This document shows positions 237 to 37,741 of a stretch of 64,000 nucleotides of DNA, in pieces. The translations under genes were made by a program, and so were the position numbers. Each line of letters begins with the position of its first letter. Position 1 is the first letter of the stretch. The stretch comes from Bugula neritina (taxonomy: Eukaryota; Animalia; Bryozoa). The notes under the pieces were generated by a model. The model was not told where the DNA came from, searched no databases, and saw only the letters and a program-made list of their open reading frames with translations. The DNA is taken from contig OZ037766.1 in the NCBI GenBank assembly GCA_964035545.1, positions 28,131,673 to 28,195,672 on the forward strand, read 5' to 3'.

Positions 237-3080
237 GAGTGTCTGGCTAAAGAAGAGTGCAATGGCTTTAATTATAACTCTATGGAACAAAAGTGTGAGA
301 CATTCTTGTATTCAGCAGAACATCAACTGAGTGAAGTAAATAATGGCTGGACATTGTGGTTGCCAGGTGTGTTCTCAGAATGCATTAAATGTTATCTAAA
401 GTCATCAAGCAACTGTGGTGCAAAGGTTAGAGTGCTTACCTTATAGTAACCACAAAGTCAGTGGATCAAGTAACAACACCCCAGTCATATCAAGGAGAGC
501 ATTCAGTCATAATTGTTCTTATGCTGCATCAGAAAAATCTTTAGCCTACGTTGAAAAACGACCTGTTTATTGGATATAGTATATTCTAGAAATTTCATAA
601 AGTTATACCATACTTTTTAAGCTATTTACCCTTTTGTGTGGCAAGTGAGAGCCATTATGGAGGTATAAAAAATTCAGAAAAAAAAAACATTTTAAATGCT
701 GCTTTGATGCTATGTTTCAAACACTTCGTCTTCCTGCTTTCAGAAAAATGTTGTATAAAATACTAATTGTTAAGTTCAAACTTATTCTAAATTATAGTAA
801 AATGTATTTTTTAATATTGTTTCTCATGCTTTAAAAATATCATTTTTATAAGTAATATTGAAGCAAAGGAGAAAAGTTGCAGTTGCAAACCTCCATTATT
901 TTTTAAGAGCCTTGACAAACTTGTAAAAGAAAGCATGTGACAGACTACAACAGTCATGGGTCATTTTACTTGATTTAGTACACACTGAAATCTCCAGCTT
1001 TTAGCTATTTTTCACAATTTAAATGGTAACGGACATGGATTTTTGCCTAAAATTAGTAAAACACCAATTAATACACCAAAATAGTTAAGGTTCTTTTTAA
1101 TTTTGCTTGATTTCCCATGATTTTTCTTATTTATTTAGCTTATTAGGAGTGCGGACTGTTACGAAAAAAAAACCATAACCGTCCATAACCAAAATTAGCT
1201 GAATAATTAGGGAAAAACATGGGAAATGAAGCAAAATTAAAAAGAACTTTTATTACTTAGGTGTATTTATTGGTGTTTTAATAGTTTCGATTAAAAACCT
1301 ATGTTTGTTAGCAGTTATATGGTGAAAAATAGCTAAAAACTGAATTAAGTAAAATGACCCTCATATCATAGCTTTTAACCAGAAAACTGTAAAAACAATA
1401 ATCTAAATAGTTGCATGAATGCCAAGATATAGGGGAAAAGTTTCCAGAAAGTAGAAAGATATAGTTATTATTTGATTTTATATTTAAATCACTAGAAGAT
1501 CAAATGCGCAAAATATATTAACATATAGCTGTTACATTTTAAAACTTTGTAAAATAACTTTTATAGTGCCTATATATATATGCAGCTTTCTTGTGTTCAA
1601 TAAAATATTGAGGTCAAGAACTTCCCGATGACTTAAGCAAAAAAGTTGCTGGATACCATGAGCATTTTAAAAAACATAATGAGTTGTAAGATTTTCTGTA
1701 GAACAGACATATTATTTAAACAGCTAAAGAATATTTAATTTCTCTATATTATACTTTGCAAAACCTATAGTTACGTTCAAAATTAAAGCATGAGCTTTTT
1801 ATATCTCAATTCAGTTTCTGTTTATAAGCTGAAAGATTACTAATGCAGTGCTGAACCATAAAGTATATTTAGCTACTGATAAAATAATGTAAACTCAATT
1901 TTAGATTTGTTAAAAAATTTAGCTTATGTGAAAAAAAGCGTTTCTAAACAATTGTGCTATAGAAGCTTGCCCGACTGCAGAAGAAAGACCCAGCTTTAAC
2001 AAGTCTGATTACTCATTGGCTATAAATGGAGTTGCTGTTATTAGTAGCATATATTGTCAACGGATGGATGATCTCAACACATTGTCTTTTCTTAATCTTC
2101 CTACTGGTGCAGTCAGAAACTATCAGATTGGTCAAGATAGTGATCAAGGGTGAGTGTTATAGCAAATTATATATAACATATATATACAGACTGGTGAATT
2201 TTCTAGGCAGGCTCACAGCTGCCACCTTGCTGTTCACTCTGAAATCTCAGCGAAGATGTATCTTTAATGTAATTGGAAAGCAGCTGTCATCTAGGGGTTA
2301 GAGTGTTTGTTTATTAAACACGAAGTCATGGGTTCAAGCCCCAACAAAGGTTATAGGTAATTTTAGGAAGAGCATCCAGTCATAATTGCTCCTGTGTCCC
2401 ATATGAATAAGTCCTTAGAACAATTTAACAAAAAACTCTTCCTATCAGGGTTTCTGATTCCAGTCTTGCTTAGCCTTTCTTTGTCTGCAATGTAATTGAC
2501 TCAATCAAAAATAGAAACTATATTATTTTGTACTAATATAGATAATTCTATAATTATTTATTTATCTACAATAATTTTGCAGATTTACAAAGTATGGAAT
2601 AGACTTGGATAGTCTGACTCTGAGACTAGAAGACTTCACATTTGCTACTTCAACCAGGGGATCTGATAAACTGCAGATTGGATACGTAGACAACTGTTCA
2701 GGTTGTGGAGGATGGACTAACACTAGAAGTAGAATTTACTTAGACATAACTGGTGAGGTTAACAATACAATCAAATTCAAACTTGGCTTGCTTTAAATTA
2801 TACAAACAGCAATGTTATTAGGACATTATCAACAAAGCTTATCAACAGTAAATTAACATGTTACTAAAACAATACATTTGCTTGCATATTTTTAGGCACT
2901 CAGTTTGAATTAGAAGATGACGTGACTTTGAGTTGCAATGGTATCATTTCACACACTTACCACAATTATAGAACTCCACAAAGAGTTGAAACGCAATGTA
3001 CTGCGTGCTGCGGTGAGGCTTATTTTAGAAGTAGATATGGAAGCAGCGGTGGGCAGATTTCTTTACGTATTTTAAAATAG
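237..3080 (+). CDS. PAN/Apple + GON-domain secreted protein, copy A (exons 3-6; exons 1-2 lie before the window)
   Basis: Exons 237-366, 1963-2149, 2583-2752, 2896-3080 with AG/GT boundaries and continuous phase, no internal stops: [23 protein letters not shown]...WLP|EACPT...YSLAING...SIYCQRM...FLNLPTG...|[21 protein letters not shown]...GYVDNC...LDITG|TQFEL...RVETQCTACCG...ISLRILK*. Exon sizes match the other copies. Confidence 0.85.
409..548 (+). mobile_element. Degenerate tRNA-derived SINE-like fragment
   Basis: gcaactgtggtgcaaaggttagagtg...gagcattcagtcataattgttc; related sequence at 2280-2420, 34726-34862, 36875-37010 and about 59810-59920; A-box-like head, and a B-box-like ggttcaagcc in the 2280 copy. 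Confidence 0.45.
958..1360. mobile_element. Foldback MITE (GGGTCATTTTAC...GTAAAATGACCC), 4-bp TSD TCAT, Sola2-like
   Basis: Near-palindromic along its length; TCAT on both sides; the paralogous intron of copy G (about 35268-35284, aacagtcatatcatagc) is the empty site with one TCAT at that position. Confidence 0.9.
2280..2420 (+). mobile_element. Degenerate tRNA-derived SINE-like fragment
   Basis: gcagctgtcatctaggggttagagtg...atgggttcaagcccc...ggaagagcatccagtcataattgctcctg; same family as 409-548. Confidence 0.5.
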
Positions 3081-34900: not shown

Positions 34901-37741
34901 GAATTTCATAGAGTTATTGCACTAATAAAATAATTTTTAAGATATTTACCTTTTTGTGTGGCAAGTGAGTGGCCATGGAGGTACAAAAATAAATTCAAAA
35001 AAAGCCTATTTGAATGCTGTTTCGATGCTATGTTTTAAACACTTGGTCTTCCTGCTTTAAAACAAATTGCTTTCATGTTTATAAAATACCAAATGTTCAA
35101 ACTTATTCTAAGATAAAGCAAAATGTATTTTTAAATATTGTTTTGTATGCTTTAAAAATAGCATGTCTATAAGTAATATTGACCCAGGAGAAAAGCTGCA
35201 GTTGCAAACGCCTGTTATTTTTTAATAGCTTTGACAAACTTGTAGAAGAAAACATGCGACAGATTGTAACAGTCATATCATAGCTTTTAACCATTGTAGT
35301 AGCAATAATTTAAAAAGTTGCATGAATACCAAAATAATTATAAGGAAAAAGTTTCCAGAAAGTAGAGAGATACAGTTATTATTTAATTCTACATTTAAAT
35401 CACTAGAAGATCAAATTATATTAGCATGGCTGTTCTAATTGTAAACTTTATAAATCCATTTTATAGTGCCTATATTATATGCAGTTTTCTTTTGTTTGAT
35501 GAAATACTAAAATTAATACCTTTCCCATTACAAGCAGGAAAGTAGCTAAAAGTCATGTGCATTTTAAAGAACATAATAAGGCGCAAATATTTTTGATCCG
35601 ACACACATACGTAAATAACTATATAAAGAATATTTTATTTTGCTATACTTTGCCAAACTTGGTTATTTTTGAAATTAAAGCATGAGTTTTATCTGAATTA
35701 AACTTCTGTTTATAAGCTAAAAGACTATTATGGAAATGCAAAACAAGACAGTATATTAGACTACTGACAAAATTAAAAAATCAATTTTAGATTTGCTACA
35801 AAATTAAGCTTATATGAAGAAAAAACTTTTCAATATATTTTTCTATAGAAGCATGCCCAACTGCAGAAGAAAGACCCAGTTTTAACAAGTCTGATTACTC
35901 ATTGGCTGTAAATGGAGTTGCTGTTACTGGTAGCATATATTGCCAACGGATGGATGATCTAAACACTTTGTCTTTTCTCAATCTTCCCACTGGTGCAGCC
36001 AGTAACTATCAGATTGGTAAAGATGAAGATCAAGAGTGAGTGCTATAACAAATTATATATATATGTATATATATACATATATATATATATATATATATAT
36101 ATATATATATATATATATATATATATATATATATATATATATATATATACATATATATATATATATATATATATACATATATATATATATATGTGTATAT
36201 ATATATATATATATATATATATATATATATATATATATATATATACATATATATGTATATATATACATATATATATATATATATATATATGTATATATAT
36301 ATATATATATAGATATATATGTATATATATATGTATATATATATGTAAGCCTAGGGCCACACTGTGCGTATTTTCGCATGCGAAAATTAAAATCACAAGT
36401 AGCAAAGGTGTCCACTGTAGCGTCAGTGATGCGTGATAAATAAAGCTTTCATTTTTAAATCGCACTCGCTTTCAATTAAACGCAATTTACTGGAATGTAG
36501 CACTAAATAAAGAAATTGGACACGCTGAATAGCTACCAGCCAATTAGGTGACGACGACAGAGACGATTCGCACTTGCGTTGAAAATGCAGAGCGACAAAT
36601 GCGAAGGTTTTCTCAACGCGCACAGTGAACACCTTTGCTACTTGTGATTTCAATTTTCGCATGCGAAAATACGCGCCGTGTGGCCCTAGGCTATGTATAT
36701 ATATATATATGTATATATATATATATGTATATATATATATATATACATGTAAATACAGACTGGTGACTTTCCCAAGCAGGTTCATAACTGCCACCTTGCT
36801 GTTCACTTTGAAAATTTTATTTATTCTCAGCAAAAATGTATATATGAAAAACATATATCTGCAATGTAATTGGGCAACAGCTGTGGTTTAGAGTTTAGAG
36901 CGTTTGGTTAGTAAATACAAAGTTATGGGTTTGAAGAAAAGGCCATTGGTGATGTTAGAAAGAGCATCTAGTGATAATTCCTCCTGTTCCTCATCTGACT
37001 AAGTCTTTAGTCAAATGAGGAATACAAAAGAAAAACCCACAAAAGAAAAGTAACAAGAAAAGTAACAAAAAAAGCCCTCCCATAAGTGGTTTCTCACAGA
37101 GATGGCGACTCTAAATTTGCGCTGGTTTTTTATTTTTAACGTAATTGGCTGAATAAAAATTAGGCACTCTTTTGTATTCAAATTAATTATTCTATTATTT
37201 ATTTATCTACATTAAATTTGCAGATTTACAAAGTATGGAATAGACTTGGATAGTCTGACTCTGAGACTAAATGACTTCACGTTTGCTACTTCAACCAGGG
37301 GATCTGATAAACTGCAGATTGGATACGTAGACAACTGTTCAGGTTGTGGAGGACGGACTAATACTAGAAGTAGAATTTACTTAGACATAACCGGTGAGAC
37401 TAACAATACAATCAAATTCAAACTCAGCTTGCTTTAAATCATACAGACAACAATGTTTGTCATAATTATAGTTATTATGACATTATCAGATACCAAAACT
37501 TATCAACAGTAAATTGACTTGTATTCAACACAATACATTTGGTGGCATGTTTGTAGGCACTCAGTTTGAGTTAGAAGATGACGTGACTTTGAGTTGCAAT
37601 GGATACATTGCATATACTTACCGCAATTATAGAACTTCGCAAAGAGTTGAGACACAATGTACTGCATGCTGCGGCGGTGCTTTTTTTAGAAGTGGCTATG
37701 GAAGCAGCGGTGGGCAGATTTCTTTACGTATTTTAAAATAA
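31956..37741 (+). pseudogene. PAN-GON copy G, all six exons but a premature TAA in exon 3
   Basis: Exons 31956-31998, 34021-34145, 34554-34683, 35849-36035, 37224-37393, 37557-37741; CAA in copies A, D and F is TAA at 34641-34643; no other lesion seen. Confidence 0.82.
36349..36691. mobile_element. MITE with long TIRs (GCCTAGGGCCACAC...GTGTGGCCCTAGGC), PIF/Harbinger-like
   Basis: About 70-bp imperfect TIRs; sits in (TA)n of copy G intron 4; absent from the paralogous intron of copy A (about 2170-2190); second copy at 53916-54212. Confidence 0.88.

Follow-up and report, generated by a model that had tools for sequence, protein, structure and literature searches.

The window analyzed here is a 64,000-nucleotide stretch of the Bugula neritina genome (contig OZ037766.1, positions 28,131,673 to 28,195,672 of the forward strand). 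It contains seven loci of one six-exon gene family. The first-pass annotation had described these as seven copies of a six-exon gene. Both the loci and the exon structure held up, but only three copies, c3, c4, and c6, have the whole gene, with an open frame, inside the window. The clearest arrangement is that of c6 (24823 to 28478, plus strand, 278 codons). Its exon 1 (24823-24865) supplies the start codon and the first 14 residues of a putative signal peptide, and exon 2 (26156-26280) encodes the end of that peptide and the N-terminal half of a predicted PAN module, with the first cysteine of the module at the end of the exon. The C-terminal PAN half, with three cysteines, is assigned to exon 3 (26407-26536). 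The first and middle parts of a GON-like domain are assigned to exon 4 (27160-27346) and exon 5 (27928-28097), and exon 6 (28297-28478) holds the C-terminal part, with a C...C-x2-CC pattern and the stop codon.

Lying head to head with c6 is c4, a member of a second subfamily that is read from the minus strand (19989 to 23366, 287 codons). Its exons 1 to 6 are located at 23366-23309, 23011-22881, 22192-22063, 21710-21521, 20514-20345, and 20173-19989. The third complete copy, c3, is on the plus strand (13608 to 18946, 281 codons), with exons at 13608-13650, 15305-15429, 15824-15953, 16691-16877, 17733-17908, and 18762-18946. Gene c1, also on the plus strand, is intact with an open frame of 279 codons, but it spans the left edge of the window. 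Exons 3 to 6 are found at 237-366, 1963-2149, 2583-2752, and 2896-3080, and exons 1 and 2 (locus L009) lie outside, 155 to 1982 bases to the left. The remaining six-exon locus, c7 (31956 to 37741, plus strand), has good splice sites and a nonsense codon; its exons are at 31956-31998, 34021-34145, 34554-34683, 35849-36035, 37224-37393, and 37557-37741.

All 25 introns of c1, c3, c4, c6, and c7 conform to the GT-AG rule, the exon-1 donor of c4 being GTGGGA, and their phases are conserved (1, 0, 1, 2, 1). The coding length of 278 to 287 codons agrees with the protein of approximately 280 amino acids that had been proposed. Exon 1 is kept in all six plus-strand-type copies, and every unit begins with a start-codon exon of its own, consisting of Met and a hydrophobic stretch, and ends in its own stop codon. 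The putative signal peptide, which extends from exon 1 into the start of exon 2, was judged by eye: Met-Lys is followed by about 17 uncharged hydrophobic residues, with small residues at positions -3 and -1. The sequences have N-x-S/T sequons, and their cysteines are even in number; both features are compatible with secretion, and we infer that the encoded proteins are secreted.

Extent, decay, and conservation of the gene cluster

The array had been taken to start at position 237. However, three more copies (cU1, cU2, and cU3) occur within 18 kb upstream of the window, two of which contain stop codons in exon 3. Together with this flank, the family amounts to about 10 loci in one cluster of about 55 kb. 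A search of the whole 216-Mb genome, carried out with exon 5 and exon 6 only, placed every match in this cluster. By these two exons, the genome-wide count confines the family to a single cluster; the number of intact copies had been overstated.

At least 5 of the approximately 10 loci are dead, namely, c7, c2, c5f, cU1, and cU2. In exon 3 of c7, an in-frame TAA stands in place of CAA (34641-34643). The same TAA is present in contigs that were assembled independently from a DNA run, and c7 is probably a recent pseudogene. Pseudogene c2 (7730 to 9082, plus strand) is 95% identical to its upstream twin cU3, compared with which an internal deletion of 2.6 kb has removed exons 2 to 4. Its exon 1 (7730-7772) cannot be joined in frame to exon 5 (8528-8697), which is followed by exon 6 (8898-9082). 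The minus-strand locus c5f (11906 to 12381) is a frameshifted 3' fragment, the remains of exons 5 and 6 of a minus-strand-type copy. Its exon 6 shares 83% protein identity with that of c4 and carries a 4-base insertion. Splice sites and reading frames are all preserved in c1, c3, c4, c6, and cU3.

Duplicated blocks within the cluster are 92 to 95% identical. The cluster probably grew by duplication of multigene blocks, with segments exchanged between its copies; copies have been lost through nonsense mutation, deletion, or frameshift, and the survivors are held under purifying selection. The birth-and-death evolution suggested earlier fits the presence of pseudogenes and segmental duplicates as well as the existence of two old subfamilies. 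Among close paralogues, dN/dS ranges from 0.23 to 0.61; between subfamilies it is 0.15 to 0.18, with synonymous sites saturated. In public data, relatives of the family are limited to open reading frame (ORF) fragments from two metagenomes, whose contig names include the accession number of the mitochondrial genome of Bugula neritina. Contigs of metagenomes labelled Bugula neritina contain both subfamilies, and in the tree each of the two clades, supported at 100/100, includes members from both sources. A second genome thereby retains open exons for the two subfamilies alike; one related-species contig (L017) is frameshifted. In c3, two cysteines of exon 6 are jointly replaced, by Ser and Trp. 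The same pair is lost together in c2, c3, cU3, and another related-species contig (L016), which is how the dropping of one disulfide from a working protein is expected to look.

PAN and GON-like modules

PAN/Apple modules bind proteins or carbohydrates. The module C-x3-C-x5-CNGFNY-x6-C, on which this assignment was first based, is present and is split over two exons: the first cysteine is encoded by the third codon from the end of exon 2, and exon 3 carries the remaining three. Every open copy, in either subfamily, retains this four-cysteine core. Although exon 3 represents only half a module, when searched singly it matched Pfam PAN_1 (PF00024; cut-off, 21.4 bits) in 4/4 plus-strand-type copies, with scores of 23.7 (c3), 22.7 (c6), 22.2 (cU3), and 21.2 bits (c1). 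The exon 3 of the minus-strand-type c4, searched alone, gave no PAN match; it shares 41 to 44% identity with the other copies. Matches at or near the cut-off, together with the cysteine core, support a PAN/Apple identity.

For the C-terminal domain, exons were searched one by one against Pfam GON (PF08685; cut-off, 22.6 bits), and each scored below the cut-off. Exon 4 aligned with GON positions ~12 to 56 in 8/8 copies (14.2 to 18.7 bits), c1 being among the copies with GON as well as PAN_1 matches, and exon 5 aligned with positions ~86 to 143 in 8 of 9 copies (14.1 to 19.7 bits). Summed from these single-exon searches, the two scores reach about 35 bits. Of the 24,736 Pfam families searched, GON is the sole family common to both exons. 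Profile-profile comparison by hhalign matched exon 4 to the GON exon of the ADAMTS gene in the same genome (E value of 2.4e-5) and exon 5 to a GON-like domain of P0004, an unannotated public protein of 2991 residues (93.5% probability). Comparisons of the exon-5 and exon-6 profiles with single GON exons of the ADAMTS gene were weak (E values of 0.02 to 0.09), and all fell at the expected colinear places. Exon 6, which would cover GON positions ~145 to 199, gave no GON match in Pfam or hhalign profile searches. Only its C-x2-CC aligns, weakly, to the canonical C-x2-x-C-G (E value of 0.049).

The motifs IYCQRM, FTKYGIDL, DFTFA, IYLDITG|T, and RVETQCxxCC, quoted in the first-pass annotation as evidence of GON homology, are present. 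Colinear Pfam matches in exons 4 and 5 argue for that homology, exon 6 being without a match, as do hallmark motifs that follow the order seen in the GON domain of the genome's own ADAMTS. On these profile matches, the predicted architecture is a PAN module plus the first two thirds of a GON domain. The central cysteine-rich GON segment is absent: the part covered by exon 4 stops near position 56 and that covered by exon 5 begins near position 86, so that positions ~57 to 85 are missing. The phases of exons 4 and 5 allow a direct junction, and no conserved block was seen in intron 4. This intron comprises only about 113 bases in the related contig L014, which leaves no room for a hidden mini-exon encoding the central segment. 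A sequence search found no solved GON structure.

Relationship to other GON and PAN proteins

GON domains are familiar almost exclusively from the C-terminal tails of ADAMTS9, ADAMTS20, and GON-1, and we know of no binding partners or structure for that of ADAMTS9/GON-1. The cluster domain shares with these proteins the motif order IYC, L-x-LP-x-GA-x2-NY, F-x-K...L, DFxF, and, close to the end, C-x2-CC. Whereas the ADAMTS GON domain follows a metalloprotease and TSP1 repeats, that of the cluster follows a putative signal peptide and one PAN module. It is also shorter by about 30 central positions, cysteines included, and its last third has diverged beyond profile match. A scan of six frames over 84 kb revealed no metzincin (HExxH) or TSP1 motif, as the earlier reading had it, and the units have no disintegrin-like part either. 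The family is therefore not an ADAMTS, given also the start and stop of each unit. A canonical ADAMTS gene is retained in the genome, with GON exons scoring 73 to 75 bits each; it is single copy and its intron positions are unlike those of the multicopy cluster genes.

When 1.84 billion proteins were searched with the exon-5 profile, P0004 was the sole match once the family's own ORF fragments and three repeat proteins, regarded as chance matches, were set aside. P0004 combines two N-terminal GON-like domains with RCC1 repeats and so, like the cluster family, carries GON-like domains outside ADAMTS proteases. However, it is a giant protein without a PAN module, in another context, and about 30% of residues are identical in an alignment of 54. 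Known PAN proteins (Pfam PF00024; such as the N domain of HGF and plasminogen, and nematode and apicomplexan PAN adhesins) have the four-cysteine core in common with the cluster proteins, in which, unlike in those, a GON-like domain is joined to a single PAN module. The literature searched contained no description of such a pairing. A similar layout is that of a laboratory construct of Caenorhabditis elegans, gon-1(sig_GON), which consists of a signal sequence and GON only. It rescues the secretion defects of gon-1 mutants, restoring endoplasmic reticulum (ER)-to-Golgi transport and insulin secretion, and the protease domain is dispensable for this rescue (PMC4517882). That construct is likewise protease free and is active in worms, but its GON domain is canonical, whereas the predicted cluster layout is natural, has an extra PAN module, and is diverged and expanded.

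Proposed role and alternative explanations

We consider the cluster to be a lineage-restricted group of protein-coding genes for secreted two-module binding proteins, PAN plus GON-like, with a probability of roughly 0.7. Exons 1 and 2 would provide the signal peptide, exons 2 and 3 the four-cysteine PAN/Apple module, and exons 4 to 6 a compact GON-like domain. An extracellular two-module binding role can be inferred from this layout: the PAN module would grip a protein or glycan and GON would supply a second interaction surface, with matrix, microbes, or other colonies as possible targets. That the genes form a recognition or effector family is a guess. A more specific scenario, which we regard as unlikely, is that a colonial bryozoan detached GON from an ADAMTS9-type protease, fused it to PAN, and diversified the product, GON then being an independent module for recognition or secretion control, e.g., toward bacterial symbionts, fouling microbes, or neighboring colonies.

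Somewhat less probable still is that the proteins work inside the secretory pathway in the manner of gon-1(sig_GON), adding GON activity in heavily secreting cells. The rescue in worms by a signal sequence and GON alone speaks for this, the cluster layout being the same plus PAN (PMC4517882). Yet rapid turnover of a tandem family, abundant pseudogenes, and dN/dS of 0.3 to 0.6 are not what a housekeeping role in transport would lead one to expect. Moreover, the canonical ADAMTS with its far better GON is still in the genome, the cluster domain lacks the central cysteine-rich segment, and no ER retention motif was seen at the C termini. It is also improbable that the cluster is an evolutionary leftover, in which no copy is expressed or functional now and the open copies are merely the youngest. 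The five broken loci and the frameshift in L017 would suit such decay, but dN/dS is well under 1 even between subfamilies with saturated synonymous sites, five copies keep their splice sites and frames, the second genome keeps open exons of both subfamilies, and two cysteines were lost as a pair.

The remaining doubts concern what the exons encode. A C-terminal domain unrelated to GON, with cysteines and motifs shared by chance, would account for the subthreshold Pfam scores, the unmatched exon 6, the absence of about 30 middle profile positions, and the weakness of the hhalign comparisons of exons 5 and 6 with single ADAMTS exons. We rate this as very improbable, in that, out of 24,736 families, two separate exons both match GON, in the correct order, in nearly every copy, and in both subfamilies; the exon-4 and exon-5 hhalign matches are independent of this, and even the weak alignments are colinear. 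The possibility that these exons form the 3' end of some larger ADAMTS-like gene, or parts of one giant repetitive gene, gained no support, is contradicted by the DNA, and can practically be dismissed: each unit opens with a Met-plus-hydrophobic exon and closes with a stop codon, units are found on both strands, and the stretches between them contain no shared exons, whether TSP1, metzincin, or other.

Bryozoans are a phylum with very little functional genomics, for which the cluster provides a new candidate family of recognition or matrix genes. As a natural combination of signal peptide, PAN, and GON that is held under selection in several divergent forms, the family would show which parts of GON are dispensable, namely, the central cysteine-rich segment and one disulfide, and its small, expressible proteins are material for structure and binding studies. 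If the genes are silent, they are merely another decaying lineage-specific expansion. If GON does act here as an independent module, the family would be a natural system for finding the GON binding partners of ADAMTS9/GON-1.

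Gene structure and state of the copies

The motifs quoted in the first-pass annotation recur at six places, on both the plus and the minus strand, among the stop-to-stop reading frames of the window, which spans 28131673-28195672 of contig C2 and whose DNA has a G+C content of about 29% and (TA)n runs throughout. A six-exon model was obtained by aligning the copies around each conserved block and searching for a conserved methionine exon, and it was checked exon by exon. Exon 1 encodes Met-Lys followed by 12 hydrophobic residues (3'-end phase 1). Exon 2 completes the putative signal peptide, adds the N-terminal half of the PAN module, and has C-A-Q/E as its last residues (phase 0), and exon 3 supplies the remainder of that module, containing three cysteines and ending in W-L-P (phase 1). 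Exon 4 starts with A-C-P-T and contains IYCQ and LNLPTGA-x2-NY (phase 2), exon 5 encodes FTKYGIDL ... DFTFA ... DNCSGCGG ... DIT (phase 1), and exon 6 runs from TQFEL through C ... C-x2-CC to the stop codon and has no 3' phase. A translation start within exon 2 was rejected, since in-frame stops upstream and a conserved acceptor call for a separate exon 1. GT-AG ends at 25 of 25 introns of copies c1, c3, c4, c6, and c7, together with their coding lengths of 278 to 287 codons, bear out the six-exon structure that had been claimed.

The six-exon gene is thus real, but the accompanying claim of seven copies of it has to be qualified. Copies c3 (13608-18946, plus strand), c4 (23366-19989, minus strand), and c6 (24823-28478, plus strand) are complete and open. 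Copy c1 (237-3080) is also open, with exons 1 and 2 lying to the left of the window. Copy c7 (31956-37741) is interrupted by a CAA-to-TAA nonsense change at 34641-34643; identical letters occur at normal depth in contigs assembled from a public DNA run. Copy c2 (7730-9082) is a 95%-identical twin of the upstream copy cU3; a 2.6-kb deletion in c2 took exons 2 to 4, and an in-frame join of its exons 1 and 5 is impossible. The remaining copy, c5f (11906-12381, minus strand), is a frameshifted fragment. Three further copies lie less than 18 kb upstream of the window: cU1 and cU2, on the minus strand, each have a stop in exon 3, and cU3, on the plus strand, is open in exons 2 to 6. The genome-wide count called for by the first-pass annotation was run with exons 5 and 6 and gave 9 and 10 matches, respectively, all within one 55-kb cluster of the 216-Mb assembly.

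Several other features of the array were recorded. Copies c4 and c6 are arranged head to head (23366-24823), and with 1.46 kb between their start codons the pair may have a common bidirectional promoter region. Microsatellites of the (TA)n type, several hundred bases long, occupy an intron of c3 (17930-18640) and one of c7 (36030-36450), and similar runs are dispersed across the whole array. Between c1 and c2, a 360-residue ORF (5725-6807, plus strand) matches RVT_1 with 30.4 bits and has a C-terminal Y-V-G-E-T-G-R-R-L...H-E-H that resembles, by eye, a GIY-YIG nuclease motif; these features would be consistent with a fragment of a Penelope-like retroelement. An open frame of 269 residues (42093-42902, minus strand) contains repeat-like segments and had no match in Pfam; it could be either a gene with a single exon or one large exon belonging to an unrelated gene. 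No Rfam family matched anywhere in the window at gathering thresholds.

Domain identity of the encoded proteins

Domain searches were performed with each exon separately. Exon 3 alone scored 21.2 to 23.7 bits against Pfam PAN_1 (cut-off, 21.4 bits) in the four plus-strand-type copies tested, in keeping with the proposed PAN identity. Exon 3 of c4 on its own gave no PAN_1 match, yet it is clearly homologous to exon 3 of the other copies. Exon 2 had no match in Pfam.

The proposed GON identity was supported by profile matches for exons 4 and 5 and not for exon 6. Exon 4 aligned with Pfam GON positions ~12 to 56 in all eight copies (best E value, 0.0012) and exon 5 with positions ~86 to 143 in eight of nine (best E value, 0.0049), although single-exon scores stayed below the GON cut-off of 22.6 bits. 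GON was the sole family matched by exon 5 and the sole family common to all copies of exon 4, two of which also weakly matched BppU-like_C. With 24,736 models to choose from, agreement of both exons on a single model, and in the right order, is far beyond chance. In addition, the exon-4 profile matched the canonical ADAMTS-type GON of this genome (E value, 2.4e-5), and the exon-5 profile matched a GON-like domain of P0004, a public 2,991-residue protein, with 93.5% probability. Exon 6 had no profile match in Pfam, and its hhalign comparison with GON pieces was not significant; C-x2-CC is the only part that lines up.

The central cysteine-rich GON segment (positions ~57 to 85) is truly absent from the family. 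A mini-exon hidden between exons 4 and 5 was rejected because the phases are compatible with exon 4 joining exon 5 directly, intron 4 is not conserved, and this intron measures only ~113 bases in L014, a contig of a Bugula neritina-labelled JGI metagenome. No TSP1 or metzincin motifs were found in 84 kb, which agrees with the earlier description of a protein lacking protease and TSP1 repeats.

The canonical GON lies on contig C4 (12036983-12038147) and scores 73 to 75 bits per exon. Its translation has the same motif order as the family. Its introns and those of the cluster genes occupy different positions, and one of its introns interrupts the region equivalent to family exon 5. Scanned in pieces, the two N-terminal GON-like domains of P0004 score 28.7 and 21.4 bits; this protein also has RCC1 repeats toward its C terminus and presents a GON-bearing architecture that does not belong to the ADAMTS family. 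No short GON-only proteins were found with residues 1 to 200 of P0004 as the query.

Relatives in public data

The exon-5 profile, used for an exhaustive HMM search across 1.84 billion representatives, returned two ORF fragments (64 to 65 residues), P0004, and three repeat proteins, which were taken for chance matches. A word-indexed search found six ORF fragments of the family, all from JGI. Neither search returned an annotated full-length relative. The five fragments that were traced (P0001, P0002, and P0007 to P0009) derive from short contigs in two JGI samples, 3300002729 and 3300003318; AY690838, which appears in the contig names of both samples, is given in papers as the accession of the Bugula neritina mitochondrial genome (e.g., PMC2678162). 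These JGI contigs are 71 to 91% identical to the window DNA and hold tandem copies, open exons from both subfamilies, and one frameshifted copy. The ESM Atlas searched by features yielded no usable match, the PDB searched by sequence no match for the family or the canonical GON exon, and a metagenome contig scan nothing confirmed, the weight of these blanks being limited by the short, 56-residue queries.

Evolution and candidate role

Self-comparison of the cluster revealed block duplications of 92 to 95% identity and mosaic similarity between copies. Trees of exon 5 and exon 6 resolved two clades with support of 100/100, each containing sequences from both sources. Nei-Gojobori dN/dS values, summed over exons 2 to 6, were 0.23 to 0.61 among close paralogues and 0.15 to 0.18 between the two subfamilies, for which synonymous sites are saturated. 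Two exon-6 cysteines are jointly replaced in c2, c3, and cU3, and the same pair is replaced in L016, a contig from the related source. This shared replacement points to the loss of one disulfide from a working protein at a time before the two genomes separated.

PAN modules serve in binding. The literature searches brought up no account of either a PAN+GON family or a family of stand-alone GON proteins. The main rival to an extracellular binding function is that the family might act in the secretory pathway, by analogy with C. elegans gon-1 mutants, whose secretion defects are rescued by a signal sequence combined with only the GON domain (PMC4517882). We favor a candidate role for the family proteins as extracellular recognition or matrix binding proteins; the combination of a birth-and-death pattern with moderate constraint is typical of such families.
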